From sequence record MT135025.1: a DNA stretch of 64,000 nucleotides. One strand, written 5' to 3'. The translations under genes and the position numbers were made by a program. This document shows positions 1,387-44,131 of this stretch, piece after piece; the stretch's first letter is position 1; every line of letters starts with the position of its first letter. The notes beneath the pieces are model-generated. The model did not search any database. It was not told the origin of the DNA and worked only from the letters and a program-made list of their open reading frames with translations.

Positions 1387-2651
1387 TGTTTATGGGATTA
1401 GATGGGTTTGAGTGGTGGACTGGCGTTGTCGAAGATCGAACAACCGACCCACTCAAACTTGGTAGAATTAAAGTTCGAATGATTGGTCTGCACCCAGATA
1501 AGAAAAGTTCAGAACAAGGTATTCGAACTGAAGAACTGCTTTGGGTTCATCCCATGCAGTCTCTTGATAATGCAGCAATGAACGGAATCGGGAATGCTCC
1601 TATAGGCGTCGTTGAGGGAACGTGGGTTTTTGGTTTCTTCAGAGACAAGTTGCGTCAAGATGCAGTCGCCATGGGTGTATTGCCCGGGATTCCCGAAGAT
1701 TTGCCGAACGGTAGCGTTGGGTTTAATGACCCGAATGAGAAATATCCGTTAGCAGATAAGCTTAATGAGCCAGATACAAACCGTCTAGCTCGTAATGACG
1801 TTGATCCTGACGTATATGACGAAAGTCAATCTCAGACTGCGTTTGATAACGGTGAAGCGCCTTATGTATATCGACCGCACCCGATCATTGCAAGTAAAAG
1901 AGCGGCTGAAGAGAAAGAAATCCCACTTGCTGGTTACAATGCAGAGGGTCCGAAGTACGATGAGAAAGTCACGCCGTATGCAGCACAGTATCCGTACAAT
2001 CATGTTCGTGAATCAGAATCAGGACACATTCATGAGATTGATGACACAGAGGGAGCAGAGCGTCTTCATACGTATCACAGAACTGGAACGTTTGAAGAAA
2101 TTCACCCAGATGGTAGTCGAGTGACAAAGATTATAGGCGATGATTTTGAGATTGTACATAAGAATCAAAATGTGTACATCAAAGGCAACTTGAATATCAC
2201 CGTTGTTGGCGACGCGACTTTTTACTGTCAACAAAACGTTACTCAACAGATTGACGGGGACTTGAAACAGCACGTCAAGGGTAATGTTGATCAGCACGTC
2301 GAAATGAACGTGACTCAAACAGTTGACAAAGACGTTACGCAAGTCGTTCATCAGAACGTTACACAAACCGTCGATATGAATGTCACTCAGACAGTGCATC
2401 AGAACGTTACACAGACAGTTGACGGGGATGTTAATCAAACTGTGGGCGGTAACGTTCAAAGTAACGTCACGGGCGATTACACGCAGAATATCAGCGGTAA
2501 TTACACAATCACAGTGGGCGGTTCTATGTCTGAAAGTGTTAGTTCATCGTATACTCGTTCAGCAGCATCAATAAGTGATGATGGTGGTGGCGCAACTTTG
2601 AATTTAGCAGGTTCAGCAGCATTGGACGGCACAACAGTAAGTCTAGGTTAA
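1386..2651 (+). CDS. 5: Baseplate central spike gp5 (OB-fold plus triple beta-helix, no lysozyme domain)
   Basis: OB-fold 'WWTGVVEDR..DPLKLGRIKVR', 'YPYNHVRESESGHIHEIDDT..AERLHTYHRTGTFEEI', then many 8-aa VxG/VxQ beta-helix repeats. Confidence 0.95.
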   Translation: MFMGLDGFEWWTGVVEDRTTDPLKLGRIKVRMIGLHPDKKSSEQGIRTEELLWVHPMQSLDNAAMNGIGNAPIGVVEGTWVFGFFRDKLRQDAVAMGVLPGIPEDLPNGSVGFNDPNEKYPLADKLNEPDTNRLARNDVDPDVYDESQSQTAFDNGEAPYVYRPHPIIASKRAAEEKEIPLAGYNAEGPKYDEKVTPYAAQYPYNHVRESESGHIHEIDDTEGAERLHTYHRTGTFEEIHPDGSRVTKIIGDDFEIVHKNQNVYIKGNLNITVVGDATFYCQQNVTQQIDGDLKQHVKGNVDQHVEMNVTQTVDKDVTQVVHQNVTQTVDMNVTQTVHQNVTQTVDGDVNQTVGGNVQSNVTGDYTQNISGNYTITVGGSMSESVSSSYTRSAASISDDGGGATLNLAGSAALDGTTVSLG

Positions 2652-2655
2652 TTGA

Positions 2656-3141
2656 ATGGCTAGTATTACACCAACAACATTGCCAATCATTGCAGAGGGT
2701 GAGAACGTCGATGTGACGTTCTTCGCTGTTATGGATGAAGGCGAAACATTGGTTGACATAAACATCACGAATTTTATACCAAATACGGGCATCACGATTG
2801 AGGGTGCTCGTTATTACGGTCAGTATCAGGATTCGTTTGATTTGGGACCCAGTGGCTTGAAGTATCGCGACACGCGAGACAATAGCTATCATGAAGTGAG
2901 TAAATTCAGTGATTTGCCAGCGAATCCGGCTCATGGTCACGTGTATCGCTTCGAAGCGCCTAGTCCGCTGTCAACTGATTACACATACGAAGTCACAGTC
3001 AATTACGAGTATGAAGATCCACTTGTGCCTGGTGTTATCGAAGAGCGTCAGCTAATCGAAACGTTCAGTCAGACCGTAAAGGGTAAATGGGATAATTGGG
3101 CACAGCAACTTAGAGATTATATAGCAGCGGGAGGTAATTAA
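2656..3141 (+). CDS. 5.1: T4 gp5.1-like protein
   Basis: 'EGENVDVTF...GETLVDINIT...YTYEVTVNY...TVKGKWDNWAQQLR' parallels T4 5.1, in the syntenic position. Confidence 0.8.
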   Translation: MASITPTTLPIIAEGENVDVTFFAVMDEGETLVDINITNFIPNTGITIEGARYYGQYQDSFDLGPSGLKYRDTRDNSYHEVSKFSDLPANPAHGHVYRFEAPSPLSTDYTYEVTVNYEYEDPLVPGVIEERQLIETFSQTVKGKWDNWAQQLRDYIAAGGN

Positions 3142-3437
3142 TGCCAGCTTTAGCAGGTGCAGACGAACCGACTACTGGTCACGGAACATATCCACCGACA
3201 GTAGTAACAGGGGGTAGCGGGAGAGTTACAGTACAAGGCAAACCTGCGTTATCGAAAGATAACATGGTTCATGTTACGCATTGTAACACAGTTCCGAATC
3301 ATGATTGTCACGCCGGTAGTGCAGCAACGTTTAGTCCGAAAGTGTTTATTGAGGGGAGTAATGCAATCCGTATCGGCGACACATTGACGTGCGGCGATAC
3401 GGTAGCAGGTGGTGCGGGGAAGGTTACTAGTTCGTAG
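3141..3437 (+). CDS. 5.4: PAAR-repeat spike tip protein gp5.4
   Basis: 98 aa. 'TTGHGTYPPT...VTVQGKPA...HVTH...H...SPKVFIEG..AIRIGDTLTCGDTVAGG' is PAAR-like with His/Cys metal ligands. Confidence 0.92.
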   Translation: MPALAGADEPTTGHGTYPPTVVTGGSGRVTVQGKPALSKDNMVHVTHCNTVPNHDCHAGSAATFSPKVFIEGSNAIRIGDTLTCGDTVAGGAGKVTSS

Positions 3438-3786
3438 CGTTGTGCGATTTGATTCGCTCTTCACTATTCAGAGTCGTAACGTCAACTTCTTCAGCTTTGA
3501 ATGAATTATCGACCATTTTTGGTGCTTCGACAGTCGTCATTGGATCGACTTTGTATTTTGCAGTGTCGTTTACGACTTCGGTCGCTGTAGGGCGTGTGAT
3601 TGGTGATGTGAACACTTTAAACGCACCAGCAGCAAGTGTCAGAACTAGAGCTACTGCAATGATTTTGCCGTAAGGTAGTTTCAAATCAAACTTGAAGATC
3701 TTTGACAAGATGAACGCAACAAGCAAGATTAGCAGTAATGAAACGAATACGCCAACGACTGGTGCGAGAACTAATAAAAATTCCAT
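3427..3786 (-). CDS. Hypothetical membrane protein (two N-terminal hydrophobic segments)
   Basis: 119 aa with hydrophobic residues about 3-27 and 41-57. Lies downstream of the SPFH gene on the same strand. Confidence 0.75.
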   Translation of the reverse strand: MEFLLVLAPVVGVFVSLLLILLVAFILSKIFKFDLKLPYGKIIAVALVLTLAAGAFKVFTSPITRPTATEVVNDTAKYKVDPMTTVEAPKMVDNSFKAEEVDVTTLNSEERIKSHNATN

Positions 3787-3807
3787 TGTATTTTCCTATT
3801 TCGTGTG

Positions 3808-3833
3808 AAACAAAGGGGCGACATAGCCGCCCC
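3808..3833 (-). terminator. Intrinsic terminator/attenuator after the SPFH gene
   Basis: Minus strand GGGGCG-GCTATGT-CGCCCC-TTTGTTT. Confidence 0.55.
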
Positions 3834-3839
3834 GTTTGA

Positions 3840-4715
3840 TTATTTAATCGGAGTTTGCACTGCGATTTTGTCAAGCATTTCGGTAGGTACGAATACCTTG
3901 TTGTTTGATTTCGCAAGCTCACGTAGAGTTTTTTGCTCTTCTAGGAAGCGTACGTTGTTGTTCATCAGTTTGTCAGCAACCAGTTTCTTGGTTTCTGCTT
4001 CGTACAGCTCGATTTCGCGTTGACGTTTTGAAACTTCTTCACGGGTCGCAATCTGTAGCAGGTCAAGTTTACGTTGTGCTTTTACAGTATCTTCTTGCTG
4101 ACGACGTTCAGCCGATGCTTCTTGTGCAGCAGTAATCGTTTTAGGGTAAATTACGTCAGTAACACCTACGACTTTAAGAACGAATGGCGTATCTTTCAGT
4201 TCTTGATTAAGACGCTGTTTCACGAACTGGTTAAGCTTTTCACGGTTAGATGCGACTTCCGAAATGCTGTATTCAGCAATGATTGACGGAATAATCGTGT
4301 TCAGTTTAGCTCGTGCATAACGAACGAACACATCTTGCTGTGAAATCACACCTAATTGGTCAGTCTGCGATTTGAACGGCACCTTCGCAAAAACGAAGTT
4401 GTATTTCGCAGGATCGACCGCCATGGTCATTTCAACGTCGTACTTCAGCATTAGTTCGTCTTTCGGCATGAAAGTGTCAAACTTCATTTCGTAGAAGCTG
4501 TCAGATACATCAAGCAGTACTAGACGATCTGGGTAGCGCCATGCCCAATCAAGACGGAACTTAGATGGTTGACGTGGCTCTTGAGTCAAATCGAAGCCGT
4601 CTTTAGTCTGAATCTTACCAACGAAGCCGGTTGGGATTTCAGCAGGAGTACCACAGCCAGTTAGTGCGAAGCCCAGTGCTGCTACTGAAAGAAGTTTAGC
4701 GATATTTTTAAACAT
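3840..4715 (-). CDS. SPFH/Band-7 (prohibitin/HflC-like) lipoprotein
   Basis: Lipobox ALTG-C. SPFH core 'TFMPKDELMLKYDVEMTMAV...YSISEVASNREKL...VTDVIYPKTITAAQE' and a coiled-coil tail. Confidence 0.8.
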   Translation of the reverse strand: MFKNIAKLLSVAALGFALTGCGTPAEIPTGFVGKIQTKDGFDLTQEPRQPSKFRLDWAWRYPDRLVLLDVSDSFYEMKFDTFMPKDELMLKYDVEMTMAVDPAKYNFVFAKVPFKSQTDQLGVISQQDVFVRYARAKLNTIIPSIIAEYSISEVASNREKLNQFVKQRLNQELKDTPFVLKVVGVTDVIYPKTITAAQEASAERRQQEDTVKAQRKLDLLQIATREEVSKRQREIELYEAETKKLVADKLMNNNVRFLEEQKTLRELAKSNNKVFVPTEMLDKIAVQTPIK

Positions 4716-4747
4716 GTTTTGCTCTCTTAGTTAAGTTGACGATGTGA

Positions 4748-4776
4748 ATGATACGTTGTGTAGTTCAGCATGTCAA
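4748..4776 (-). promoter_or_regulatory. sigma70-type (early) promoter, proximal, for the SPFH operon
   Basis: TTGACA-17 nt-TATCAT on the minus strand. Confidence 0.8.
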
Positions 4777-4832
4777 GTTGTTTTTCACAAATTTCTCATT
4801 TTGTTTGTGCGCTTCGTTGCGCTGAGGAGTAC

Positions 4833-4861
4833 ATAGTAGGCAAAACAAATACCCCTGTCAA
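4833..4861 (-). promoter_or_regulatory. sigma70-type (early) promoter, distal
   Basis: TTGACA-17 nt-TACTAT on the minus strand. Confidence 0.8.
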
Positions 4862-4869
4862 CACTTTTC

Positions 4870-4877
4870 TATAAATA
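4870..4877 (+). promoter_or_regulatory. T4-type late promoter for gene 25
   Basis: TATAAATA upstream of the GGAG RBS and ATG 4901. Confidence 0.9.
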
Positions 4878-4900
4878 AATTTAAAATTCGGAGAAAATCT

Positions 4901-5320
4901 ATGGCAATTGCAGAGTTGAACACTCTAAAGCCAGGGAGTTACTACTTCAGTGACATCCCAGCAAATTTCGGCAAGAGTGTTGTAAACAATGACTTGAGCG
5001 CATCATATGACTTGAAAGCAATACAAGAATCAATCATCGGAATCGTGAGTACAAAGAAAGGCGAGCGACCTTTCAATCCCGAATTCGGATGTGACATCAG
5101 CAATCAGCTATTTGAAAACATTTCGCCTGCAAGTGCGTTTGCAATCAAATACAGTATTGAGAACGCGATTTCTAAATGGGAACCGCGTGTGGTGATTCAA
5201 AAGATTGAAGTTCTACCGCTTTATGACAAGAACACATACGAAATTGTGGTTCAGTATCATCTACGCACCAACTTTGATCGACTGTTTGCGCTTAAAACAA
5301 GACTTGTGAATCGTCTTTAA
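4901..5320 (+). CDS. 25: Baseplate wedge subunit gp25
   Basis: 'AIQESIIGIVSTKKGERPFNPEFGCDI..QLFEN...IENAISKWEPRV' is the GPW/gp25 signature. Confidence 0.95.
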   Translation: MAIAELNTLKPGSYYFSDIPANFGKSVVNNDLSASYDLKAIQESIIGIVSTKKGERPFNPEFGCDISNQLFENISPASAFAIKYSIENAISKWEPRVVIQKIEVLPLYDKNTYEIVVQYHLRTNFDRLFALKTRLVNRL

Positions 5321-15152: not shown

Positions 15153-15838
15153 TGACAACTAAAGCAAGACATGCGTCACGAGTGTGGAGCAATGACTCGC
15201 GCATGAAGATTTTCGATCAAACAGCAATTGACGACTCGGGTTTATTCCCGGGTGGTCGCTTCAATTTCCGCGGTGCGGTATTAGGCGATTCAACAATTGA
15301 CGAAATTCAAGAAGGCGCGTGGGATCCGAACGTTCAAGCTGCAATTATGCAGCTTGCAATGGCAGCAATTTTGCCAGTCGGTACTATTATCTCGTCAACA
15401 GACGCAACGAACCCGTTTAACACGAACCAGTTCAACGAAACAATTACATTCACTGGGACTTCGGCAGTTGATAACATCAGCTTATATGGCGTTTCAGTGC
15501 AGTTGACTGTGGGCGATTCAGACAATGACATTGCAGAAAAAGTTTTCACGGCTCTGCACGCCTCGAATCTGTTTGACACCGTTCCGACAGATCACGTCGC
15601 ACCGTCAAACACGTTTCTATTGAAGCACCGCAGTTCTAGACCGCACAATCCTGCGTACTCAACGACGTTTGAAGACATTTTAGACCCAGAAGGTAGTCCA
15701 ACTGGGATTCAAGCTAAAAGCGTCGTCACGGGTTCGTCAGACGGTCAGAAGAGCTTAGGTTACGGGGAATGGGAATTGTATCACACTGATACAACAACAT
15801 TCACTGATACTGTATATTACTACAGAAGGATTGCATAA
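15152..15838 (+). CDS. 11: Baseplate wedge subunit/tail pin gp11
   Basis: ATG overlaps the gene 10 stop (TAATG). 'AAILPVGTII' and C-terminal 'LGYGEWELY...YYYRRIA'; synteny. Confidence 0.85.
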   Translation: MTTKARHASRVWSNDSRMKIFDQTAIDDSGLFPGGRFNFRGAVLGDSTIDEIQEGAWDPNVQAAIMQLAMAAILPVGTIISSTDATNPFNTNQFNETITFTGTSAVDNISLYGVSVQLTVGDSDNDIAEKVFTALHASNLFDTVPTDHVAPSNTFLLKHRSSRPHNPAYSTTFEDILDPEGSPTGIQAKSVVTGSSDGQKSLGYGEWELYHTDTTTFTDTVYYYRRIA

Positions 15839-17376
15839 TGTCAGGAACAAACATATTCACGCACGCGAGTGACGAGGCAAAATATGTTTACCTGCAACCG
15901 TTCACTTCTCCCGGTTCAGCTTTTGAAGCGGGAGGAGATGTTCAGAGTATTTTGGAGCAAATTGATCCAAGCGCATTGCTACCACTGCCGCCGTTACCTT
16001 ATGCAACTCCGACTGAGGACGGTGCAGTTGAGTACTCGACTCAAGCAGAAGCTAATGCACTTGATGATTTATTGACTGTTCTTACACCCGAAACATTAGA
16101 CGGTGTTGATCAGTTTGTATCACCAGCAACCGATACTCAGCTAGGTAACTTACTTGAATTACGTTCAAGTGATTTGACTCGAACATATGCATCGTCAGAT
16201 GCTAGTCGTTTGCTTTCATATCGTCGTCTTGAAGAAATGATGACGACTAGAAATGCACTTGCCGATGACACAACTAATGAATCTCAGGGGTTTGCTCAGT
16301 TTGCAACTCTAGCTGAATCATTAGCATACAACCCATCACGCATAATCTCGCCTATGCGAACGTGGAACTTGATTAAAAAAGAAATTCCAAACCCGTGGGC
16401 GCAAGCAACCGAGACATCAACCGGTGTCGTTAGAACAGTAGCACCGAGTGATTCATTGAAATCAGATGCTTCTATCGCGATTAGTGTCAAAGGGTTGAAT
16501 CATGTATCAGCAACAACTTCAAAGCGAGGTGCGTTTAAGTTAACACAAAACAACTATGATCGCAATGCAAGTGATGCAAACGAATATGCAATAACTCCCG
16601 GTACAATTGATAATTTATTGGCTACGGGTGATAAGGTCGGATTCTTTCAACTCCCTGCTACGTTCACAAACGACTCAACTCAAGCAACTAGTGCGGCATT
16701 AGGCTACGAACTTGCAAATAAACTGGGTCCAGATGGTGGTACGATTACAGGTACGCTTCAATGTGACAACATTTACAGTAATATTGTTACGAGACAAAAG
16801 CAATACAGCTATGGCGGCTCATATTACGTTAATGTAAGAGAAACGCGAGAAGTATTCCCGAACAATCAACTTGACGCTAAAATCGGCTTAGCAGGTCGAC
16901 CAGTCGGGAGCATTTTTCATTGTACAGAAAATGTAGACCCGAATGTTGTATTTGGCGGCGTGTGGTATAGAATCAGAGCAGGTCAAACAATGATCGGTCA
17001 AGGCACGGGCGACGATGGCGTGCGTCGTCGTTACTTCTCGGCAGGGACATATCGCGATGACGACCGAGTTACATTGTACGAGCGCCATTTGCCTAGCCAT
17101 AGTCACAAAAGCTGGGGTGAAACATACTCGGGTTCTAAATCTGCATGTGTTAAGTACGGTACATATCGAAACCCGTATGGCGTGACGTATTACTGTAAAG
17201 AATACAGCTACGTTGATTATTGGAGATTTGGTAAATCTGGCTCTCGCAATAATATAGGCATGGGTTCTACTGACCGAGATAATTACATGTATTACACATC
17301 ACCGGTAGGTGGCGGTCAAGCTCATGAAAACATGATGCCATTCTATCCCGTTTATATTTGGAGACGAGTTAAATGA
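15838..17376 (+). CDS. 12: Short tail fibre gp12, paralogue A
   Basis: 'NIFTHASDEAKYV' N-terminus, fibre repeats, collar 'PVGSIF...NPNVVFGGVW', HxH needle 'LPSHSH', end 'MPFYPVYIWRRVK'. Confidence 0.85.
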   Translation: MSGTNIFTHASDEAKYVYLQPFTSPGSAFEAGGDVQSILEQIDPSALLPLPPLPYATPTEDGAVEYSTQAEANALDDLLTVLTPETLDGVDQFVSPATDTQLGNLLELRSSDLTRTYASSDASRLLSYRRLEEMMTTRNALADDTTNESQGFAQFATLAESLAYNPSRIISPMRTWNLIKKEIPNPWAQATETSTGVVRTVAPSDSLKSDASIAISVKGLNHVSATTSKRGAFKLTQNNYDRNASDANEYAITPGTIDNLLATGDKVGFFQLPATFTNDSTQATSAALGYELANKLGPDGGTITGTLQCDNIYSNIVTRQKQYSYGGSYYVNVRETREVFPNNQLDAKIGLAGRPVGSIFHCTENVDPNVVFGGVWYRIRAGQTMIGQGTGDDGVRRRYFSAGTYRDDDRVTLYERHLPSHSHKSWGETYSGSKSACVKYGTYRNPYGVTYYCKEYSYVDYWRFGKSGSRNNIGMGSTDRDNYMYYTSPVGGGQAHENMMPFYPVYIWRRVK

Positions 17377-18794
17377 GTAAAGGAACTCAAATTTTCAATC
17401 ACGTGATTGATGATGCGGGTACGGTTACAGTTGAAGTCGCTGGTACTGCCTTTGACGGGCAGACTGGCGGCAACGATGATCTTCAGACGTGTCTTGAATT
17501 GATTCAAGATCACGCTGTTCAGCCGTTACCTGATTACCCAGTCGCGTCAACAACTGTGGCTGGTATTACGAAATTAAGTGATGAAGCCGCAGTAGTTGAT
17601 CCGCTAAACACAGATAGCGCGGTTACGCCAAGTTCGCTTGATTATTGGATGCAAAATCACGCAACTGCGACTGAATTGCAGTATGGTTTCGTAAAGCTGA
17701 TAACCGAAAGCACAATCGACACAGTAGCACCGTCAGACCCCGTAGAAGCTGCACAAAAGCACGCATTCACGTTAAAAACGCTGAACTATGCTCTTAATAC
17801 TAGATTTTACGCGACTGAATCTGACCCAGGTGCTGTGCGTCTAGCGACGAACGCGCAAGCAACGACAACAGGCACACTTTCAACGACTGTAGCAATGACG
17901 CCGCAGCGAGTTAAAGAAATGCTTGACGTGTGGGCAAATACAACTGCATCAGACGCATCCGAAACTACAAAAGGGTTGATTCGACTAGCAAACGGGACTG
18001 AAGTCAACAGTACATTAGCGACTGAAGATAACTTGGCAATTTCGCCATATCGTTTTAACTTTAGAACAGCAACTACGACTCGTAAGGCAGGGTTTTATCT
18101 ACCCGACGCTACAGTTGCCAACGCTCGTGCGTCGAACGAACATGCAGTTACAGTGGGCACATTGAATCTATTCAGTGCAAATAGTTCTCGTGTGGGTGTT
18201 GCTAAAATAGCAAATAACCTGACGACGAATGATCCGTTACAAGCTCTAAGCGCAGCAATGGGTTATAAGTTGAACAACGAGAAGATTGGCGATGCAGGTG
18301 GTACAGTCACGGGTACCCTGAAGATCAACAATGTTCAGTCAGTTGGCGGAACTCAGTTGATGACTAATGGTCTAATTGAATCGCAAGCAATGCTTAATAT
18401 GTATCCAGTCGGTTCAGTTTACATGTCGTTAGTATCAACATCACCGGCTACACTTTTCGGTGGTACATGGGCTAGATTGGCACAAGGTCGTGTTCTTGTT
18501 TCAGAGGGTTCATATGGCGGGAGAACTTTTGCAGTTCGCCAAACTGGCGGCGAGTATGAAGTTCAGCTAACTGAAGCAACAATCCCTGCTCATAAACACG
18601 CTGGCTGGGGTGAACATTACGATGGTAATGGTATAGGATTTGGTGTTGCGAAGCAATACGGTCGTAACAACCCAGGTTCTCGTAGAACAGACAGTGACAA
18701 CTATCTATACTACACATCACCAGTCGGTGGTAACCAAGCGCACAACAACGTACAGCCATACTATACTGTTTACATGTGGGAAAGAACTGCATAA
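17373..18794 (+). CDS. 12: Short tail fibre gp12, paralogue B
   Basis: 'FNHVIDDAGTV', 'ASTTVAGITKLS', 'ATESDPGAVRLAT', collar 'YPVGSVYMS..TSPATLFGGTW', 'IPAHKH', end 'QPYYTVYMWERTA'. Confidence 0.88.
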   Translation: MSKGTQIFNHVIDDAGTVTVEVAGTAFDGQTGGNDDLQTCLELIQDHAVQPLPDYPVASTTVAGITKLSDEAAVVDPLNTDSAVTPSSLDYWMQNHATATELQYGFVKLITESTIDTVAPSDPVEAAQKHAFTLKTLNYALNTRFYATESDPGAVRLATNAQATTTGTLSTTVAMTPQRVKEMLDVWANTTASDASETTKGLIRLANGTEVNSTLATEDNLAISPYRFNFRTATTTRKAGFYLPDATVANARASNEHAVTVGTLNLFSANSSRVGVAKIANNLTTNDPLQALSAAMGYKLNNEKIGDAGGTVTGTLKINNVQSVGGTQLMTNGLIESQAMLNMYPVGSVYMSLVSTSPATLFGGTWARLAQGRVLVSEGSYGGRTFAVRQTGGEYEVQLTEATIPAHKHAGWGEHYDGNGIGFGVAKQYGRNNPGSRRTDSDNYLYYTSPVGGNQAHNNVQPYYTVYMWERTA

Positions 18795-19091: not shown

Positions 19092-20771
19092 ATGACAATT
19101 CAAAAGCCTATCATTACAGAGCTTAGATATGTAAATGGTCAACCAGATCCTTCTCAACGTCCCGATCAAACTCGAATTAACTGGGCTAAGAATGGTGAGA
19201 GCATCAATGGTGCTTCTGGTGACACAGTTTCTGACGGTGTGCTAAACCGCGCAGGAGTACAGATCCAAGAAAACGTTCTGAACACACATTATAATACAAA
19301 AGCACAGCAAACGACAATCGAAGAACTTGTCGATACCGTAAACGAACTGACGGGTGGTGGCGACGCAAACCTTGGTGCTCGTGTTTCTCAGACTGAATTC
19401 GATATTGATGTTCTTGAAAATCAAGTAGATGATCTTCAAGACAATGTTGGTGTACCGTCTACTATTGATGTTATGGCAACCGGTTTATATCGTCGCGCTG
19501 AAGACATCGAAGCTGATATTGGTGTTCGTAACCCAAATGACATCCCAAATGACGTTGAGAATAATGACACGATTCGTAAAGACTTGTATTTCATCAAACG
19601 TCGTATCGGTAACGACCGTAACTACGATGTCAACGGGAATTCATCTCCGAGTACAAACCCAACTGGTATGAAATATCAGATTGAAGATTTGTACAACAAA
19701 ACTGCAACGATCAATGCTGAAATTGGTGAAAACACAATCCCGTTGACAATCAATGGTCGTCTGTATGAGTTGGAGCAAAACTCACAAGTTGGTGACGTTG
19801 CTGAACTTCGTAGCGAAATCGGCGATTCTCAAGATGCAGACCCTGCTCGTACGATTTATTTGCGCCTTGACGACGCAGAAAGTGCGATTAGTGACAACTC
19901 ATCAGACATAAATTTGTTGCAACAAGAAATCGAAACTCCAACAACTGGTCTAATTGATCGCGTTTCGGCTAATGAAACTGCAATTTCAGACGGTCAGACT
20001 CAAATCACGGCTAATGCTCAGTCAATTAATGACATTACAACTGACCTTGGCTCGTACTCAGTAGGTGACGTGTATGCAGGTACGGTTAAAGCTCGTCTAT
20101 CGACGTTTAACGACGACATTTCTAATCTATGGAGCCGTTTAGGGGCTACTGACGCAGAGACTGGCACAGTGTCGTACAGAGTGGCAGGATTAGAGGCTAG
20201 TCTAGGGGATCGCGATAGTCCGGTTGAATTCACAGCGTGGTACACTATTCAAGAAAACCGTGGTCTGATTGACTCAGCTCAGTCGGATGTTGATGGTCTA
20301 TTGACTGTAGTCGGTCAGAGTGATACTGAAGTGGGTACTTTGCGTGCTCGTGTTCTTGAGCTTGAAGCCAACTTGGATTATGCAATGTTGACTTCAGACA
20401 CGCCAAACACGGCATCGTTGACAACAACACCGACAGACATGTTCAGTTTATTCAACGTTGAATCAGACGTAAGTGGTTTCACATACACAGGTGGTGTTTT
20501 GACTAGAACTGGTCTTGGTATTAAAAAGCCGATCATGTTGAACTGGGTAGTTGTTTCGCCAACTACAACAACACTTACGATTAAGATTGATATTGTCAAT
20601 CCGTCTGGTAGTGTTACTATTGAAAAAACACGTACGCTTCGTGCAGGTGCAGTTACGCCGATCAATATTGTTCACGTTGCTGACATTGAAGACACTGGTG
20701 ACATTAGTATTCTTGCTAGTACTGCGGCAAACGTTACGATTGAACACGAATCGTTCTTCATGCAACTATAA
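19092..20771 (+). CDS. wac: Fibritin (neck whiskers)
   Basis: N-terminus 'LRYVNGQPD...RINWAKNGE..NGAS......DGVLNRAGVQIQEN' as in T4 Wac, a long segmented coiled coil, and position between 12 and 13. Confidence 0.9.
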   Translation: MTIQKPIITELRYVNGQPDPSQRPDQTRINWAKNGESINGASGDTVSDGVLNRAGVQIQENVLNTHYNTKAQQTTIEELVDTVNELTGGGDANLGARVSQTEFDIDVLENQVDDLQDNVGVPSTIDVMATGLYRRAEDIEADIGVRNPNDIPNDVENNDTIRKDLYFIKRRIGNDRNYDVNGNSSPSTNPTGMKYQIEDLYNKTATINAEIGENTIPLTINGRLYELEQNSQVGDVAELRSEIGDSQDADPARTIYLRLDDAESAISDNSSDINLLQQEIETPTTGLIDRVSANETAISDGQTQITANAQSINDITTDLGSYSVGDVYAGTVKARLSTFNDDISNLWSRLGATDAETGTVSYRVAGLEASLGDRDSPVEFTAWYTIQENRGLIDSAQSDVDGLLTVVGQSDTEVGTLRARVLELEANLDYAMLTSDTPNTASLTTTPTDMFSLFNVESDVSGFTYTGGVLTRTGLGIKKPIMLNWVVVSPTTTTLTIKIDIVNPSGSVTIEKTRTLRAGAVTPINIVHVADIEDTGDISILASTAANVTIEHESFFMQL

Positions 20772-33392: not shown

Positions 33393-34937
33393 ATGAACCT
33401 AACTGAAAAATGGAAAGACTTGCTTGAAGCAGAAGGTGCGGATATGCCAGAGATTGCAACTGCAACTAAGCAAAAAATCATGTCGAAAATCTTTGAAAAC
33501 CAAGATCGCGACATCAACAACGATCCGATGTATCGTGACCCGCAACTTGTTGAAGCATTCAATGCTGGTCTTAACGAAGCTGTAGTTAACGGCGACCACG
33601 GTTACGATCCTGCGAATATCGCACAAGGCGTTACTACTGGTGCAGTAACTAACATCGGCCCTACCGTAATGGGTATGGTACGTCGTGCTATTCCACAGCT
33701 TATCGCTTTCGATATTGCTGGTGTTCAGCCAATGACTGGTCCAACTAGCCAAGTATTCACACTTCGCTCAGTATACGGTAAAGATCCTCTAACTGGCGCA
33801 GAAGCATTCCATCCGACTCGTCAAGCTGACGCTTCGTTCTCTGGTCAAGCTGCTGCATCGACAATTGCAGACTTCCCAACTACTGGTGCTGCAACTGACG
33901 GTACTCCGTACAAAGCTGAAGTAACTACTTCTGGTGGCGACGTTTCAATGCGTTACTTCCTAGCACTAGGCGCTGTTACTCTAGCAGTAGCTGGTCAAAT
34001 GACTGCAACTGAATACACTGACGGTGTTGCGGGTGGTCTGCTTGTTGAAATCGACGCTGGTATGGCAACTTCTCAGGCTGAACTACAAGAGAACTTCAAC
34101 GGTTCAAGCAACAACGAGTGGAACGAAATGTCATTCCGCATCGACAAACAAGTTGTTGAAGCGAAATCTCGTCAATTGAAAGCTCAATACTCAATCGAGC
34201 TTGCGCAAGACCTACGTGCTGTACACGGTCTAGACGCTGACGCTGAACTGAGCGGTATCCTAGCTAACGAAGTAATGGTTGAACTGAACCGTGAAATCGT
34301 TAACCTAGTTAACTCTCAAGCTCAAATCGGTAAGTCTGGCTGGACTCAAGGCGCAGGTGCTGCTGGTGTGTTTGACTTCTCAGACGCAGTAGACGTGAAA
34401 GGCGCTCGTTGGGCTGGTGAAGCTTACAAAGCTCTATTGATCCAAATCGAAAAAGAAGCGAACGAAATCGGTCGTCAAACTGGTCGTGGTAACGGTAACT
34501 TCATCATTGCATCACGCAACGTAGTTTCTGCACTATCAATGACTGATACTCTTGTTGGTCCTGCTGCACAAGGTATGCAAGACGGTTCAATGAACACTGA
34601 CACTAACCAAACTGTGTTCGCGGGTGTTCTAGGCGGTCGCTTCAAAGTGTACATCGACCAATACGCAGTGAACGATTACTTCACAGTTGGTTTCAAAGGT
34701 TCTACTGAAATGGACGCTGGTGTGTTCTACTCACCTTACGTACCGCTGACTCCACTACGTGGTTCAGACAGCAAGAACTTCCAGCCAGTAATCGGGTTCA
34801 AGACTCGTTACGGTGTGCAAGTTAACCCATTCGCAGATCCAACTGCTTCGGCAACTAAAGTTGGTAACGGTGCTCCAATCGCTGCATCAATGGGCAAAAA
34901 CGCTTACTTCCGTCGCGTATTCGTTAAGGGTCTGTAA
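33393..34937 (+). CDS. 23: Major capsid protein gp23
   Basis: 'GMVRRAIPQLIAFDIAGVQPMTGPT', 'AKSRQLKAQYSIELAQDLRAVHGLDADAEL', 'FQPVIGFKTRYG'. Confidence 0.99.
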   Translation: MNLTEKWKDLLEAEGADMPEIATATKQKIMSKIFENQDRDINNDPMYRDPQLVEAFNAGLNEAVVNGDHGYDPANIAQGVTTGAVTNIGPTVMGMVRRAIPQLIAFDIAGVQPMTGPTSQVFTLRSVYGKDPLTGAEAFHPTRQADASFSGQAAASTIADFPTTGAATDGTPYKAEVTTSGGDVSMRYFLALGAVTLAVAGQMTATEYTDGVAGGLLVEIDAGMATSQAELQENFNGSSNNEWNEMSFRIDKQVVEAKSRQLKAQYSIELAQDLRAVHGLDADAELSGILANEVMVELNREIVNLVNSQAQIGKSGWTQGAGAAGVFDFSDAVDVKGARWAGEAYKALLIQIEKEANEIGRQTGRGNGNFIIASRNVVSALSMTDTLVGPAAQGMQDGSMNTDTNQTVFAGVLGGRFKVYIDQYAVNDYFTVGFKGSTEMDAGVFYSPYVPLTPLRGSDSKNFQPVIGFKTRYGVQVNPFADPTASATKVGNGAPIAASMGKNAYFRRVFVKGL

Positions 34938-34993: not shown

Positions 34994-36091
34994 TTATAGA
35001 CTATGCAAATAATTGTAGGCGATACTGACTCGCTTATCTTCTAGAGCTTCGCCGTATGCAGGTCCCGGCTCAACGTCAACTTTGATATTTCGAGTTAGTT
35101 CAATTAACTCAGTGAGCATTTTACGCTTCACTTCATCTTTTACTTGCGATAATGCAACTTCGAACGGTAGACCTTCTTTGTATGCACCTAGTTTACGTAA
35201 AACAATGACAATCGTTTCATCAAATGCATTAGCAACGTTTAGACTCATCAAGATCTCAGATGCTTTATCAAATTGCTTAGTCGCACCGAATTTTCGAGTG
35301 TAACGATTACGATGGTCGAATGATGCCCATTTAGCAATTAGCTGCACATCTTCACACTTGAAAGGCATACGATTGTAGAACTTCAATTCAAGCAATTCGC
35401 GTGCGCTAGGTACTGCACAGAACCCAATTTGACCTAAAAATGCGAAGTACATGTGCGCGTCTTTCTCAGACAGTGCTTTTTGAGTCTCTAGCCACACACG
35501 TTCTTTAGGTAGATTCTCAAGCATACCGTCATTGATCATCTTCTTGCATAGCTCAATCGTTTCTTCTGCGACTGCAAATCCCATGCCGTAGTAACGAGCA
35601 TAGAAACGAGCAACACGCAGAACACGCAATGGGTCTTCAGCAAATGCTTCAGTCGTGTGACGAAGAATCTTATTTTTCAAGTCGTCTAGACCCCCGTACG
35701 GGTCGATGATGTCATCAGTCGAGCCCCACATGAATAGACTATTCGGTGTCATGTCTGGTATAGCCATTGAGTTGATAGTCAGATCTCGTCGAGATAAGTC
35801 GTCTTCTAACGTAACACCGTCAGTTGTGAAAGTGAAGTCAGTAGTTTTACCGCCAGTGCTACGCTCTACACGAGCAAGCGCGACTTCATTACCGTCTTTA
35901 TCAAGCCAAACAGGGAAATCAGCGCCGATTGGCTCGCCGTACATAGCCATCATTTGCTCATGCGTACAACCGGTTACTACGTAATCAATGTCTTTCGGGA
36001 ATCTAGACCAACCCTCGACATGTTTCAGAATGGAGTCGCGTACTGCGCCACCGACAATGTATTTTTTCATCAAGTTAAGATTCGCTTTCAT
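34994..36091 (-). CDS. cca: tRNA nucleotidyltransferase (CCA-adding enzyme, class II)
   Basis: 'YIVGGAVRD', 'DIDYVV', 'EVALARVER', 'LEDDLSRRDLTINSMA', 'FAEDPLRVLRVARFYARY'. Confidence 0.95.
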   Translation of the reverse strand: MKANLNLMKKYIVGGAVRDSILKHVEGWSRFPKDIDYVVTGCTHEQMMAMYGEPIGADFPVWLDKDGNEVALARVERSTGGKTTDFTFTTDGVTLEDDLSRRDLTINSMAIPDMTPNSLFMWGSTDDIIDPYGGLDDLKNKILRHTTEAFAEDPLRVLRVARFYARYYGMGFAVAEETIELCKKMINDGMLENLPKERVWLETQKALSEKDAHMYFAFLGQIGFCAVPSARELLELKFYNRMPFKCEDVQLIAKWASFDHRNRYTRKFGATKQFDKASEILMSLNVANAFDETIVIVLRKLGAYKEGLPFEVALSQVKDEVKRKMLTELIELTRNIKVDVEPGPAYGEALEDKRVSIAYNYLHSL

Positions 36092-36113: not shown

Positions 36114-36142
36114 ACAGTACATGACTAAATAATATAAGTCAA
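36114..36142 (-). promoter_or_regulatory. Probable sigma70-type promoter for cca
   Basis: TTGACT-17 nt-TACTGT on the minus strand; the -10 is weak. Confidence 0.5.
36124..36131 (+). promoter_or_regulatory. Probable late promoter variant for the 36.1-38.8 kb operon
   Basis: ACTAAATA, sharing the TAAATA core of the other late promoters. Confidence 0.5.
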
Positions 36143-36150
36143 CCAGATTT

Positions 36151-36504
36151 ATGAGAAGATTTATGGAATACACAAAATACGAGATTCAGAAATATCGTAG
36201 TCGTAGAAGTCATGGCATCAATCTGCCAGATTACAACGGAGCGATATACATCGACTTGCCAAGTAGCCCGTGTGGGTCTGATAGCAATTACTTTGCTGTA
36301 CTGAACAGCGAAGAGCAAATCGCAGTTGAGATTGCATTTGGCGGGTATTACAACGAAACTGAGGGTGATAGAGACCCTATACCAGAAGATACCGATTTTC
36401 ATTTGATTGGTTCTCAGGGTCATTATGAAGCTCAGGGGCGAATGTTTAATAGCAACTTGCGCGTATGGCTGCGAGGGGCGGGTAAAATCACTATAATTTA
36501 CTAA
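36151..36504 (+). CDS. Hypothetical protein (start may be ATG 36163)
   Basis: 117 aa, beta-rich, directly upstream of the double-foldon fibre gene. Confidence 0.7.
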   Translation: MRRFMEYTKYEIQKYRSRRSHGINLPDYNGAIYIDLPSSPCGSDSNYFAVLNSEEQIAVEIAFGGYYNETEGDRDPIPEDTDFHLIGSQGHYEAQGRMFNSNLRVWLRGAGKITIIY

Positions 36505-36513
36505 GGGAATACT

Positions 36514-37968
36514 ATGTCAAGTATTAATATACCTGGCTTCGGCTACTCGGCTGTACCTGAATCGCCAAACGATGGGCAGCTATACGGTAGACGAAATGCC
36601 ACATGGGAGTTAATTGCTCTCTCAGACGGTGTGTTAGAAGCACCCGCAGACGGACAAGAATATGTTCGAAAAGATTTTCAATGGGTTTTGCCAACTTACC
36701 CAACTTATACCGCAAGTAATATTAGCCTAACGTCGTCGTTATTCGCGTCAACGAATGTTCACGATGCGCTTGAGGAACTTTACTACGAAAACCCACTCAA
36801 TGTCGTGCTTGTTCGCAGCGAAGATGATCTGCCAGCCCCACAACTGATCAATGGTGTGTTGACGCACAAACTCGAAGAAAAGGAATATGTCATTGATGGT
36901 AATGTTACGATTGCAAATTCACTAGGGTTTCCGGGGCCCGGGATCAGTGCAACGATTAAAGCGATAAACCGTTCAGTGTTGACTTATACTGGAACCGATG
37001 CCATGTTCTATGATCTAGGAGCACAAGGCAATATTGAAATCGCTGGTCAGACTGAGTTCCAAGCCCCGAATGCCGACATGTTCAATTTGATTTCTGGTGC
37101 GGGTGGTTTCTCATTTCAGTCACGGTATGCTGACCGATTCAATAACTGTGACCGTCTAGGTGAAGTTTACTGCGGCGGATTATCTACGATTGTGTTCAAT
37201 AACGGTACATTCAGAAACTTCAATCAAGGGCTTGTTGTTCACGACCCGGGCTTTTTTGAAGTAAACACGTTCTTCGTATTCGGAAACAATCAAGCCGGTT
37301 GCACGTACTTTACAGTACAAGGAACATCATCAACTGGCTCGATTAACATCGACACAGTGACATGTTCTATCGGGACAAATGAGACAATTTTCAATTTTAA
37401 CCCGAATATCCAAGCAACTATTGATACGATCAACGTTCGAAACTGTAGTCTTCGTGGACCACTGAACGGTACGCTATTTGCACCGGGAAGTTTGACACCT
37501 CGTGATTTCAAATTTGAAAGTCTTGGTAACACTCTTATCCCGAATACGGTTCAGGGTGGTTTGTTGTCATTATCTAGCAATGCGACACCAACTGTAGTCG
37601 GGGCAGTAAATACTCCAACACTTGCGGCAGGTACATGGGTTGTTCAAGAAACATCACATTTCCTAGGTTCAACGGGAGGTCGTTTGACTTCGCAAGTTAT
37701 TAGAGACATTTCGACTAGTATTGATGCGTCAATGACAGTTGAACCATCATCAGGTCAGGGTATCGTAATTCGCGCATACTTAGCTAAAAACGGTGTTCCG
37801 ATTGCAGCAAGTGCAAAAACAACAACTGCTGATAGCGGTAAAGCTGGATTCTTGTCACTTACATGGCAAATGGACATTTCACAAGGTGATTATATTGAGC
37901 TATTTGTCGAAAATAGAACCGGTTCAACGTCGATTATTGTCACAGATGCTACGTTACGCATCCCGTAA
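36514..37968 (+). CDS. Putative trimeric fibre/decoration protein with two foldon-like motifs, a beta-solenoid-like middle and a jelly-roll C-terminus
   Basis: 'VPESPNDGQLYGRRNATWEL' and 'VLEAPADGQEYVRKDFQWVL' compared with the T4 foldon [23 protein letters not shown]. Also 'ASNISL...ASTNVHDALEEL' and C-terminal 'AYLAKNG...MDISQGDYIELFVEN'. Confidence 0.7.
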   Translation: MSSINIPGFGYSAVPESPNDGQLYGRRNATWELIALSDGVLEAPADGQEYVRKDFQWVLPTYPTYTASNISLTSSLFASTNVHDALEELYYENPLNVVLVRSEDDLPAPQLINGVLTHKLEEKEYVIDGNVTIANSLGFPGPGISATIKAINRSVLTYTGTDAMFYDLGAQGNIEIAGQTEFQAPNADMFNLISGAGGFSFQSRYADRFNNCDRLGEVYCGGLSTIVFNNGTFRNFNQGLVVHDPGFFEVNTFFVFGNNQAGCTYFTVQGTSSTGSINIDTVTCSIGTNETIFNFNPNIQATIDTINVRNCSLRGPLNGTLFAPGSLTPRDFKFESLGNTLIPNTVQGGLLSLSSNATPTVVGAVNTPTLAAGTWVVQETSHFLGSTGGRLTSQVIRDISTSIDASMTVEPSSGQGIVIRAYLAKNGVPIAASAKTTTADSGKAGFLSLTWQMDISQGDYIELFVENRTGSTSIIVTDATLRIP

Positions 37969-38004: not shown

Positions 38005-38496
38005 ATGAGTCAATTGAAAACACACGCAGATTCACTAACTAAAGCAGAACTAGATGAGTTTGCACAAGAGTTTTACGGCATCGAGCTTGATCGTCGTAAA
38101 TCAAAAGGAGCTATGACTAAAGCTCTTCTTGAGGGTGCGGAAGGTAAAACTCCACTGAAGCAACTTCCGTGGGAAGAACTTCTTCTTGAAGAAACACCCG
38201 AGCCAGTCGTAGAGACGGAAGTCAAAGAAGAATCCGAATCTGTTAAAGTTGAGATTCCAAAAGATGATTCTTTCGAGCCTCTACCACTACCTTTCAAACG
38301 CGGGCATGAACGTTTCATGATTGCGTCTGATTCTGCCGTTGAATCGGCAAAGGGAATTGTTGCAGGTAAAGTCTCGCTTGACGATGTGCTTGCATCAGAT
38401 CTTCGCGTAGTTAAATCAATCTTGCATTATGTCGAGCAAGACGGCAAGGTGCTAGTGCGTGAAACTCGCAATAGTCAATTCATCACAATTAAATAG
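38005..38496 (+). CDS. inh: Inhibitor of prohead protease Inh, paralogue 1
   Basis: 'KAELDEFAQEFYGIELDRRKS' and end 'ILHYVEQDGKVLVRETRNSQFITIK' (T4 Inh ends YYINRDGSVLIRETRNSSFVTLK). AATAAATA at 37967. Confidence 0.9.
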   Translation: MSQLKTHADSLTKAELDEFAQEFYGIELDRRKSKGAMTKALLEGAEGKTPLKQLPWEELLLEETPEPVVETEVKEESESVKVEIPKDDSFEPLPLPFKRGHERFMIASDSAVESAKGIVAGKVSLDDVLASDLRVVKSILHYVEQDGKVLVRETRNSQFITIK

Positions 38497-38504
38497 GAAC
38501 TGAA

Positions 38505-38837
38505 ATGACAACACCAATCAACACTGATATGAACCTTGCAGTCACTCTTGATGATTTGACTGTAGCAGCGGCAATCGCTGCAAAAAGTGGGTACGATGAT
38601 GTGACAACTTCCGCACTAAATCACGCGGGTGAGTCATACATCATTGTAGACAAGCAAACTTATGAAGAGCTTAAAGCTGCGATTGAGACTGCTAGTCCGT
38701 TGAGTTCAATCACTGGTCTTTCTCAAGAATGTGTTGACATTCTAGCAGGAGCAGTTGATTCAGCAACGACACTTTGCCGCGAACACACTAACAGTCGATT
38801 CTTCCGAATCGCATGGACTGTTACAGTAACGCCATAA
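38505..38837 (+). CDS. Hypothetical protein
   Basis: 110 aa, AGGA RBS, follows inh. Confidence 0.75.
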   Translation: MTTPINTDMNLAVTLDDLTVAAAIAAKSGYDDVTTSALNHAGESYIIVDKQTYEELKAAIETASPLSSITGLSQECVDILAGAVDSATTLCREHTNSRFFRIAWTVTVTP

Positions 38838-43409: not shown

Positions 43410-43916
43410 TTACCTCAGATAAGTGAAGCTATTTGAATTGCGTTCATGAACTAACAATTCACCGCGAAGCTTAACCCAATGTTCAATTGTCTTTAGATCG
43501 TGCGAGTCTCGACGACCGATGTGCCAATCATGAATGATTTCAGCCGATAACGGTTGATATAATTCATCACCGCGACGATATGTAGGCATCCATTTAGGTT
43601 TGAATTCATCTTCGACCTTAATCGCATCAACTGGATCGACTAGAACTACGTCAACACGTTCTAAATGCTCGTGAGATTCAACGTCAACGAATTCAGTGTC
43701 TTTGGCATCTGATTCATCGACTAAATCACAACGAGTCTCAGAATCAATTACAGCGCATTCTAGCGGTACTTCGGTTTGAGATACGATTTCATGAGCGATA
43801 AGCTCTTCGATCATTTTGCTCTTGGTAAGTGATTTGTCAAGTTCGATGTCATAATGTTTCAACGCGAATTCAGCGACACCTCGCTTAGTCTGTTTCTTTA
43901 GATATTCAGTAATCAT
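43410..43916 (-). CDS. inh: Inh-like protein, paralogue 2
   Basis: ATG 43916 after AGGA. 'VAEFALKHYDIELDKSLTKSKMIEEL' and end 'IEHWVKLRGELLVHERNSNSFTYLR'. Confidence 0.75.
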   Translation of the reverse strand: MITEYLKKQTKRGVAEFALKHYDIELDKSLTKSKMIEELIAHEIVSQTEVPLECAVIDSETRCDLVDESDAKDTEFVDVESHEHLERVDVVLVDPVDAIKVEDEFKPKWMPTYRRGDELYQPLSAEIIHDWHIGRRDSHDLKTIEHWVKLRGELLVHERNSNSFTYLR

Positions 43917-43924
43917 ATTATTCC

Positions 43925-44131
43925 TTAGCAATTAATAGTGACCCATTCGTTTTGGTTCAAGTCAAAGAATGTCAGAGTATCGACACAACGTTCATTCTTC
44001 CTCATTTCTTCGCGATTCGTTTCAAGAACAGGCAAATAATGCTTGCACAATGTGGCGTGATATTGGCACCCGTCGCGTTCTAATTTAAGACATCCTTGCG
44101 TCATACAGGACATCATTTCTTCTCGTGTCAT
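43925..44131 (-). CDS. Small protein, possibly WYL_2/Sm-like family
   Basis: 'HATLCKHYLP...TLTFFDLNQNEWVTI' resembles the xTL..lp...vfDlexxxW pattern. Confidence 0.55.
   Translation of the reverse strand: MTREEMMSCMTQGCLKLERDGCQYHATLCKHYLPVLETNREEMRKNERCVDTLTFFDLNQNEWVTINC

Follow-up and report, generated by a model that had tools for sequence, protein, structure and literature searches.

Foldon-type repeats at the N-terminus of a predicted trimeric fibre encoded in a variable two-gene cassette of KVP40-like vibriophages

The window analysed here, a stretch of 64,000 nucleotides identical to bases 1-64000 of the KVP40-like Schizotequatrovirus Vibrio phage V07 (MT135025.1), contains a confirmed open reading frame (ORF) of 484 aa (36514..37968, + strand, stop codon included), the product of which is 98.6% identical to KVP40.0366 (NP_899611.1), labelled as a hypothetical protein across all records and referred to below as KVP40.0366. 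It is predicted, and we consider it probable, to be an accessory fibre of KVP40-type particles, a modular homotrimer and tailspike-like adhesin, in which a short N-terminal head peptide and two tandem foldon-type units precede a right-handed beta-helix and a TNF/C1q-like knob. The gene stands behind a small partner gene in a two-gene cassette which, judged by the sequences compared, is variable both in its genome address and in its fibre body, with at least five unrelated bodies behind one N-terminal head. KVP40.0366 is a clean natural case of the foldon motif in tandem at an N-terminus, and its units belong to a large and poorly described repeat family of phage fibres.

Foldon-type units and the N-terminal head peptide

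Protein engineers use few trimerisation tags as widely as the foldon, which is usually viewed as a single C-terminal domain of fibritin. Two units of this type are present in KVP40.0366, unit 1 at residues 14-34 (36553..36615, + strand) and unit 2 at residues 40-60 (36631..36693, + strand), the nearer of the two to the T4 foldon. The conserved prolines of the units, at residues 18 and 44, give a period of 26 aa, and in register the units share 10 of 21 residues, the next-best 21-mer of the protein reaching six; this in-register identity was matched by none of 200,000 composition-preserving shuffles. When HMMER aligned the units with chains of solved T4 foldons such as 1rfo, identity was found at 14 of 18 core positions for unit 2 and at about 10 of 19 for unit 1. 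Residues 8-60 matched 8wtj/8wro, an engineered protein with a tandem pair of T4 foldons, at E = 1.5e-6, and unit 2 alone (residues 40-60) matched isolated foldon chains at E about 0.006. The Pfam family Fibritin_C (PF07921) matched the 484-aa protein over residues 40-59 only (18.9 bits, E 0.0018), narrowly below its gathering score of 21, and matched all seven KVP40-type homologues at E<=0.01 (best 2.2e-4). With at least two units recurring about every 21-30 aa in a protein of fibre type as the definition, a tandem repeat is thus present, and the original prediction, made from the letters of the window, was right both in its two foldon-like units 26 aa apart and in the 14 of 18 positions shared by the second unit and the T4 foldon.

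The seven KVP40-type homologues are 73-96% identical overall to the 484-aa protein, and residues 1-60 are its best-conserved part, with 67% of positions invariant compared to 41% in the C-terminal domain; the corresponding figures are 12% for residues 61-100 and 61% for the beta-helix. The head peptide (MSSINIPG..., residues 1-13, 36514..36552, + strand) has nine of its 13 positions invariant in these homologues. The string MSSI-x-L/I-P/T-G opens each of the five cassette fibre types that bear this head and was absent elsewhere in the window, in the fetched loci and in 149 proteins of the repeat family, making the peptide a candidate virion-anchoring or partner-recognition element.

Regarding the distribution of the repeat, an HMMER scan of residues 1-76 against 1.84 billion representative proteins returned 1,167 representatives at E<=1e-3, of which 240 reached E<=1e-10; a single protein had up to 11 matched stretches. 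The best matches outside the KVP40.0366 family were multi-repeat proteins, 40-54% identical, and not fibritin tails. Units were counted in the 149 best of these, all of which had at least two and 129 at least four (median 5, maximum 14), with periods mostly of 21-30 aa; the first unit lay no more than 30 residues from the N-terminus in 11 proteins, at least 150 residues followed the last unit in 87, and across the fibre proteins units occur at N-terminal, internal and C-terminal positions. Domains co-occurring in sampled repeat proteins included T4_gp9_10_N, Phage_tail_C, Gp53-like_C, Collagen and YadA_stalk, and nine of ten sampled proteins passed the Fibritin_C threshold via summed repeats. 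Among named phages, the fibritin of Serratia phage CHI14 (wac, positions 1208-2962 of locus L002) has five tandem units at its C-terminus, and Pseudomonas phage Noxifer has a tail fibre with four tandem units ahead of a C-terminal domain. At the level of sequence, then, the foldon-type unit is no fibritin speciality but a tandem repeat widely distributed in phage fibres.

Tandem foldon-type repeats are already recognised by Pfam and InterPro, the fibres of phages ValKK3 and 1.081.O being annotated via the fibritin C-terminal superfamily. Double foldon motifs have been described in JS98-type fibritins, and several fibritins carry 2-5 foldon copies (PMC3797505). Natural tandem foldon arrays were not found among solved structures, where the tandem matches were all engineered proteins. 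A paper on foldon-tipped P22 needles likewise concerned an engineered construct and was set aside as irrelevant.

Predicted fold of the fibre body and its homologues

The AlphaFold2 monomer model of the 484-aa protein, built from a 32-sequence alignment, had a mean predicted local distance difference test score (pLDDT) of 85.7 and a predicted template-modelling score (pTM) of 0.71, with pLDDT above 88 for residues 101-484 and between 53 and 72 for residues 41-100. Unit 2 was modelled as a beta hairpin (51-53/56-58, pLDDT about 68). The units are followed by a variable linker (residues 61-96, 36694..36801, + strand) with an NVHDALEEL helix (82-92), and the "NISL" fibre motif that had been noticed behind the units is found at residues 67-89, in the stretch "NISL...NVHDALEEL".

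Beyond the linker, the model contains a tailspike-like right-handed parallel beta-helix at residues ~97-340 (36802..37533, + strand; boundary to the knob approximate, about +/-10 residues). In Foldseek comparisons with the PDB it matched TSP4 of CBA120 (5w6h, E 1.8e-7), the K2-2 TSP, AM24, Kp7 gp52 and APK09, with 8iq5, 5w5p, 7xyc and 8oq0 among the entries matched. The C-terminal knob (residues ~341-484, 37534..37965, + strand), assigned from Foldseek and homology, is predicted to have the TNF/C1q-like jelly-roll fold, which comprises ten strands and about 130-150 residues. Its last ~145 residues matched BxpB (8d02), ExsFA, BclA (3twi), EDA-A1 (1rj7) and C1QL, as well as the C1q domain of Caprin-2 (4oum, template-modelling (TM) score 0.71), the central spike knob of phi812 and a tail protein of cyanophage A4; against 8d02, 1rj7, 3twi, 4oum and 4qqp the Foldseek probability was 1.0, with target TM-scores of 0.57-0.71 over 142-152 columns. 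A viral structure library gave analogues of the whole body together with many phage proteins labelled "C1q domain" and "pectate lyase superfamily". The family sequence profile had no match in the PDB, the body being recognised by fold comparison alone. The solenoid-like region and C1q/BclA-like C-terminus of the original prediction are in this way borne out as a confident predicted fold. No enzymatic activity is claimed for the beta-helix, and ligand binding by it is putative.

Homologues of the body (residues ~77-484) belong to phrog_16509. Those with other N-termini are 46-57% identical; four carry T4_gp9_10_N, one DUF2793 and another a collagen-like stretch. Regarding their gene contexts, which are structural modules in unrelated phages, the homologue of an SU10-like podovirus (P0012) follows adaptor and "Phage_stabilise" genes, that of a P22-like podovirus (P0020) lies 5' of "Phage_stabilise", and that of an RcGTA-like siphovirus (P0021) comes directly after a Phage-tail_3/Rcc01698_C gene. 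In the Zobellviridae vibriophage 1.077.O, a "TNF-like domain protein", 31% identical to residues 308-483, is encoded ahead of a head-closure gene. As far as sequence comparison goes, body and N-terminus are modules that can be exchanged.

The two-gene cassette and its genomic setting

The fibre gene starts 9 nt past the stop codon of a small gene, KVP40.0365 (36151..36504, alternative start 36163, + strand), which encodes a protein of 117 aa assigned to phrog_14406 (E 5e-56). A homologue of this protein is present in one copy in each of 50 Schizotequatrovirus-type records, and at all loci examined the small gene lies directly 5' of the fibre gene, the two being 8-15 nt apart (9 nt in four of five types). 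In the KVP40/V07 type the cassette lies between cca and inh and its 484-aa fibre has two units. In the type of VH1_2019, ValKK3 and VH7D (also phi-Grn1, phi-ST2 and XZ1) it is located ~57 kb from inh, adjoining a tRNA cluster in VH1_2019, and encodes a fibre of 571 aa with one unit and an unrelated body; the 484-aa and VH1_2019 fibres share 54% identity in their first 34-37 residues and have no relationship past these. The cassette of 1.081.O is found beside nrdAB (fibre of 411 aa, four units), that of VS1 more than 100 kb from inh (489 aa, two units) and that of D479 beside cca (604 aa, no unit). In VH1_2019, VH7D, ValKK3, PVA23 and 1.081.O, inh follows directly after cca (or an unannotated cca slot) with no cassette between them. 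The V. crassostreae phages of the 6E35.1a type have the small gene at the cca-inh locus, followed by a 90-aa gene and a 621-aa fibre which is unrelated to KVP40.0366 and lacks both the MSSI head and the units. The idea that the 90-aa protein, a virion component of 6E35.1a, is a detached N-terminal head or foldon was dropped, the similarity not being significant (E 0.023 pairwise) and Pfam giving no match. In 1.081.O a restriction-endonuclease-like gene, which may be a homing endonuclease, lies between g23 and cca (positions 1743-3182 of locus L014).

Only three homologue clusters of the 117-aa protein were present among 5.8 billion proteins, and it is almost confined to Schizotequatroviruses. 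Its model, built from four sequences, is a small beta sandwich (pLDDT 75.9, pTM 0.72), for which the best Foldseek match had E 3.8e-3 and a TM-score of about 0.5 (PirA, PliG), an uninformative result for a generic beta sandwich; the family profile gave nothing significant against the PDB. The homologue VP6E351A_0012 is absent from the 94 proteins detected in purified particles of phage 6E35.1a (PMC12028318 Table S4). Since the 117-aa protein is strictly linked to the fibre yet undetected in particles, an assembly helper fits at least as well as the capsid adaptor of the original prediction, a role that is weakened by this absence and by the generic model.

In the same particles, mass spectrometry gave 414/637 spectral counts for the 621-aa fibre of the cassette locus, second to the major capsid protein (1070/1264), with 165/280 for the portal, 81/154 for the sheath, 105/149 for fibritin, 10/13 for the 90-aa protein and 24/40 for the homologue of a 110-aa ORF that lies directly 3' of inh in the window (38505-38837, + strand, phrog_13922) (PMC12028318 Table S4). 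The authors of that proteome placed the 621-aa fibre in the class "long tail fibers, collar & whiskers" and predicted it to be a receptor-binding protein (PMC12028318). These counts establish the presence of the 621-aa fibre in the virion and not its location; the portal count exceeds that of the sheath, hence spectral counts in this data set do not scale with copy number.

Regarding expression, a TAAATA core at 36126..36131 (+ strand) upstream of the cassette may belong to a T4-type late promoter, and the seven cassette versions examined all have such a core some 15-45 nt upstream of the small gene, on the coding strand. Late transcription of the cassette is probable. Scans for sigma-70-type promoters and terminators did no better than shuffles. 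Elsewhere in the window, exact TATAAATA sites occur at 4870, 19045, 26934, 32443, 33347, 44145 and 55635, all seven on the + strand; the six that were checked lie ~30-50 nt upstream of the starts of an ORF at 4901, wac, gp18, gp22, gp23 and uvsW, and seven sites were reached in one of 100 shuffles. Strand, placement and shuffle counts fit T4-type late promoters.

Around the cassette, gp23 (33393-34937, + strand) lies on the 5' side, and cca, encoding the CCA-adding tRNA nucleotidyltransferase (34994-36091, - strand), is located between gp23 and the 117-aa ORF. The direct 3' neighbour of the fibre gene, outside the cassette, is inh, encoding the prohead protease inhibitor (38005..38496, + strand; phrog_8608, E 2e-77), immediately upstream of which the fibre gene had correctly been placed. 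A second inh-like gene lies 5 kb off (43410-43931, - strand); KVP40.0376 is annotated as "prohead protease inhibitor", and the 6E35.1a homologue of this second gene belongs to phrog_8608. The fibritin gene wac (19092..20771, + strand) encodes a protein that matches phrog_1056 over residues 2-544 and ends in a non-foldon domain. As had been predicted, this fibritin lacks a foldon, having neither a Fibritin_C match nor a phmmer match to unit 1 or 2, and no match to foldon-type units was found in the other reading frames of the window; its residues ~445-559 form a beta-rich C-terminal domain unrelated to the foldon and with no Pfam match. Two adjoining gp12-like genes (15838-17376 and 17373-18794, + strand) both match phrog_910 "tail collar fiber" and Gp10_C, and the short tail fibre gene is therefore duplicated. 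The V07 record MT135025.1 comprises 349,331 bp and is flagged UNVERIFIED_ORG, its relatives having 244-258 kb; a length ~100 kb beyond that of all relatives suggests an assembly artefact or concatenation.

Attachment, rival explanations and comparison with known systems

Trimer formation by KVP40.0366 is likely, given its predicted trimer modules, and its incorporation into the virion is probable. The head peptide (residues 1-13), conserved across unrelated bodies, would dock the fibre to the particle or to a partner, perhaps with help in anchoring from the 117-aa protein as a chaperone or adaptor. On the pattern of the solved foldon, the two hairpin units (residues 14-60) would stack into a short trimeric stalk, which the variable one-helix linker (61-96) would join to the beta-helix (about 97-340), and the trimeric TNF/C1q-like knob (about 341-484) would present the most variable surface. 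Beta-helix and knob may together bind a host surface glycan or other ligand, as their fold and the tail-fibre contexts of their homologues suggest. The original prediction had N-terminal foldons nucleating the trimer, a role made less credible by the presence of 0, 1, 2 or 4 units in sister cassettes and of a C-terminal TNF-like trimer domain; the range of 0-4 units in sister fibres points to optional stalk or spacer modules in place of an essential nucleus.

Several observations weigh against an accessory virion fibre of this kind. Residues 1-40 were modelled at pLDDT <50, in a monomer only, and unit 1 within them has no confident structure. The global Foldseek TM-scores of the beta-helix are low (0.15-0.28), so that its likeness to depolymerase tailspikes is generic. 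The full TATAAATA octamer was not found before the cassette, which has two mismatches to it and a core of 6 nt. The 6E35.1a proteome concerns an allele that is not homologous to the 484-aa fibre and has no MSSI head. In Vibrio phage PVA23 (ON190025.1, locus L022), neither the small gene nor the 484-aa and 571-aa fibre types were detected; it is the sole Schizotequatrovirus record without a detectable cassette and, if its assembly is complete, a natural cassette-free comparator, from which it follows that the fibre is probably dispensable and its role perhaps marginal.

Regarding the site of attachment, the tail or neck has a little less than an even chance, the capsid a sizeable but smaller one, and another site, or no place in the virion, a small one. 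T4 Hoc is a monomeric chain of Ig-like domains which, on the mature capsid, attaches at the centre of gp23 hexamers, and KVP40.0366 had been proposed to be a trimeric head fibre or appendage replacing it at the hoc position, with the 117-aa protein as a possible capsid adaptor; on this view it would be anchored on the gp23/gp24 lattice. The trimeric, fibre-like character stands as likely, on the strength of the trimer-type modules and the beta-helix; the replacement of Hoc is unlikely, if a serious contender. The gene does lie between g23 and inh, adjoining head genes, with no Hoc-family protein at the cca-inh locus, and the map order seen from the g23 side ("X, inh, ..., uvsW") resembles that of T4. 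However, hoc is not directly before inh, as had been supposed: in Mosigvirus F31, a T-even relative, inh (positions 2943-3611 of locus L023) is followed on the same strand by a Hoc-like gene (3621-5039; phrog_1149, E 7e-138), that is, hoc lies 3' of inh, whereas the 484-aa gene lies 5' and the 3' slot is taken by the 110-aa ORF at 38505-38837. Read with regard to orientation, the "hoc position" is held by this 110-aa ORF, which is kept in all Schizotequatrovirus records searched. The orientation of inh relative to g23 differs from that in T4 and the cassette moves between loci, in close relatives to non-head loci such as the tRNA cluster, nrdAB or sites more than 100 kb from inh, so that position is weak evidence for a Hoc-like role; nor did the 484-aa protein match any Hoc PHROG or Ig-type Pfam family. 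The very short head peptide, unlike the usual tail-fibre anchor domains of 50-150 aa, speaks for the capsid, but the body homologues are found among tail or head-tail genes, four of them with baseplate-type gp9/10 N-termini. The 6E35.1a fibre at the same locus, with a count above portal, sheath and fibritin, hints at many copies per particle, a hint offset by the failure of those counts to track copy number (portal above sheath), by the classing of this syntenic fibre together with the long tail fibers, the collar and the whiskers, and by the absence of the 117-aa homologue from the detected proteins (PMC12028318).

Two further explanations concern the origin of the units and the fate of the protein. 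A capture of the foldon from the phage's own fibritin would explain the foldon-less wac, which has a different C-terminal domain, and would agree with the module exchange inferred in the original prediction, of which the exchangeability of body and N-terminus is supported and the transfer from fibritin is not. Such a capture is very improbable: more than 1,000 diverse fibre proteins (1,167 repeat representatives) bear the units at N-terminal, internal and C-terminal positions, the nearest non-family relatives of residues 1-76 are multi-repeat proteins (40-54%) and not fibritin tails, and sister cassettes have anywhere from 0 to 4 units. The unit is common in phage fibres, with 2-5 copies in several fibritins, hence no exchange with wac is needed; and because the foldon has been swapped for other C-terminal domains in all more distant fibritins, including those of SchizoT-even phages (PMC3797505), neither is a local donor-recipient event. 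It is likewise improbable, if slightly less so, that KVP40.0366 is a soluble late protein outside the virion, glycan-binding or depolymerising and freed at lysis, as the resemblance of the beta-helix to depolymerase tailspikes and the cassette-free PVA23 would allow. In other phages the body homologues lie within structural gene modules, and in 6E35.1a the alternative fibre at the cassette locus is a major virion protein; the retention of the head peptide across unrelated bodies suits a role in docking better than it suits a free enzyme.

The two-gene cassette is a candidate for an accessory adhesin module of the KVP40-like phages, which have a broad host range and are studied for aquaculture use, and a particle location would add a component to the parts list of T4-type virions. 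A more far-reaching version, which we regard as quite unlikely, is a plug-in system in which head peptide and foldon-type layers dock a trimeric fibre on the capsid surface or vertices and functionally replace Hoc; docking might run through the co-encoded beta-sandwich protein, with adhesin body and cassette address freely exchanged. If true, a T4-type phage would have a decoration system of trimeric head fibres. Searches of the literature on KVP40.0366/0365, on KVP40 head fibres and on cryo-electron microscopy of Schizotequatroviruses returned nothing, and no earlier account was found of the Schizotequatrovirus cassette and its mobility, of the N-terminal head or of how large the repeat family is. 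Every part of KVP40.0366 is of a known kind, and in this respect the gene is fairly ordinary.

Compared with known systems, the units share the key positions of the T4 fibritin foldon (PF07921), namely Pro, Asp-Gly, Tyr, Arg, Trp and Leu, but the T4 foldon is C-terminal, whereas those of KVP40.0366 are N-terminal, have no preceding coiled coil and are not in the neck fibritin. The CHI14 fibritin, the Noxifer fibre and about 1,100 metagenomic proteins have the same repeat, period range and fibre or tail domains; KVP40.0366 differs from these arrays in having two units only, 13 residues from the N-terminus and behind a Schizotequatrovirus-specific head peptide. The sister cassettes (VH1_2019/ValKK3/VH7D, 1.081.O, VS1 and D479) share with the KVP40 type the phrog_14406 gene, the short spacer and the MSSI head, and foldon-type units are present in four of the five cassette fibre types, but bodies are unrelated, units number 0, 1, 2 or 4 and genome positions differ. 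The podovirus and siphovirus fibres (P0012, P0020, P0021 and 1.077.O) have a beta-helix and jelly roll homologous to those of KVP40.0366 (27-57% identity), with gp9/10-type, DUF2793 or other anchors in place of MSSI head and foldon-type units. The C1q/TNF-like knobs of BclA, BxpB/ExsFA and the phi812 spike have the jelly-roll fold predicted for the C-terminal ~145 residues, yet the knob of KVP40.0366 has no detectable sequence similarity to solved C1q/TNF members and is fused to a beta-helix, not to a collagen-like stalk. T4 Hoc and KVP40.0366, lastly, both adjoin inh and are both probably dispensable, but KVP40.0366 has no Ig-like domains, lies on the other side of inh and is predicted to be a trimeric fibre.

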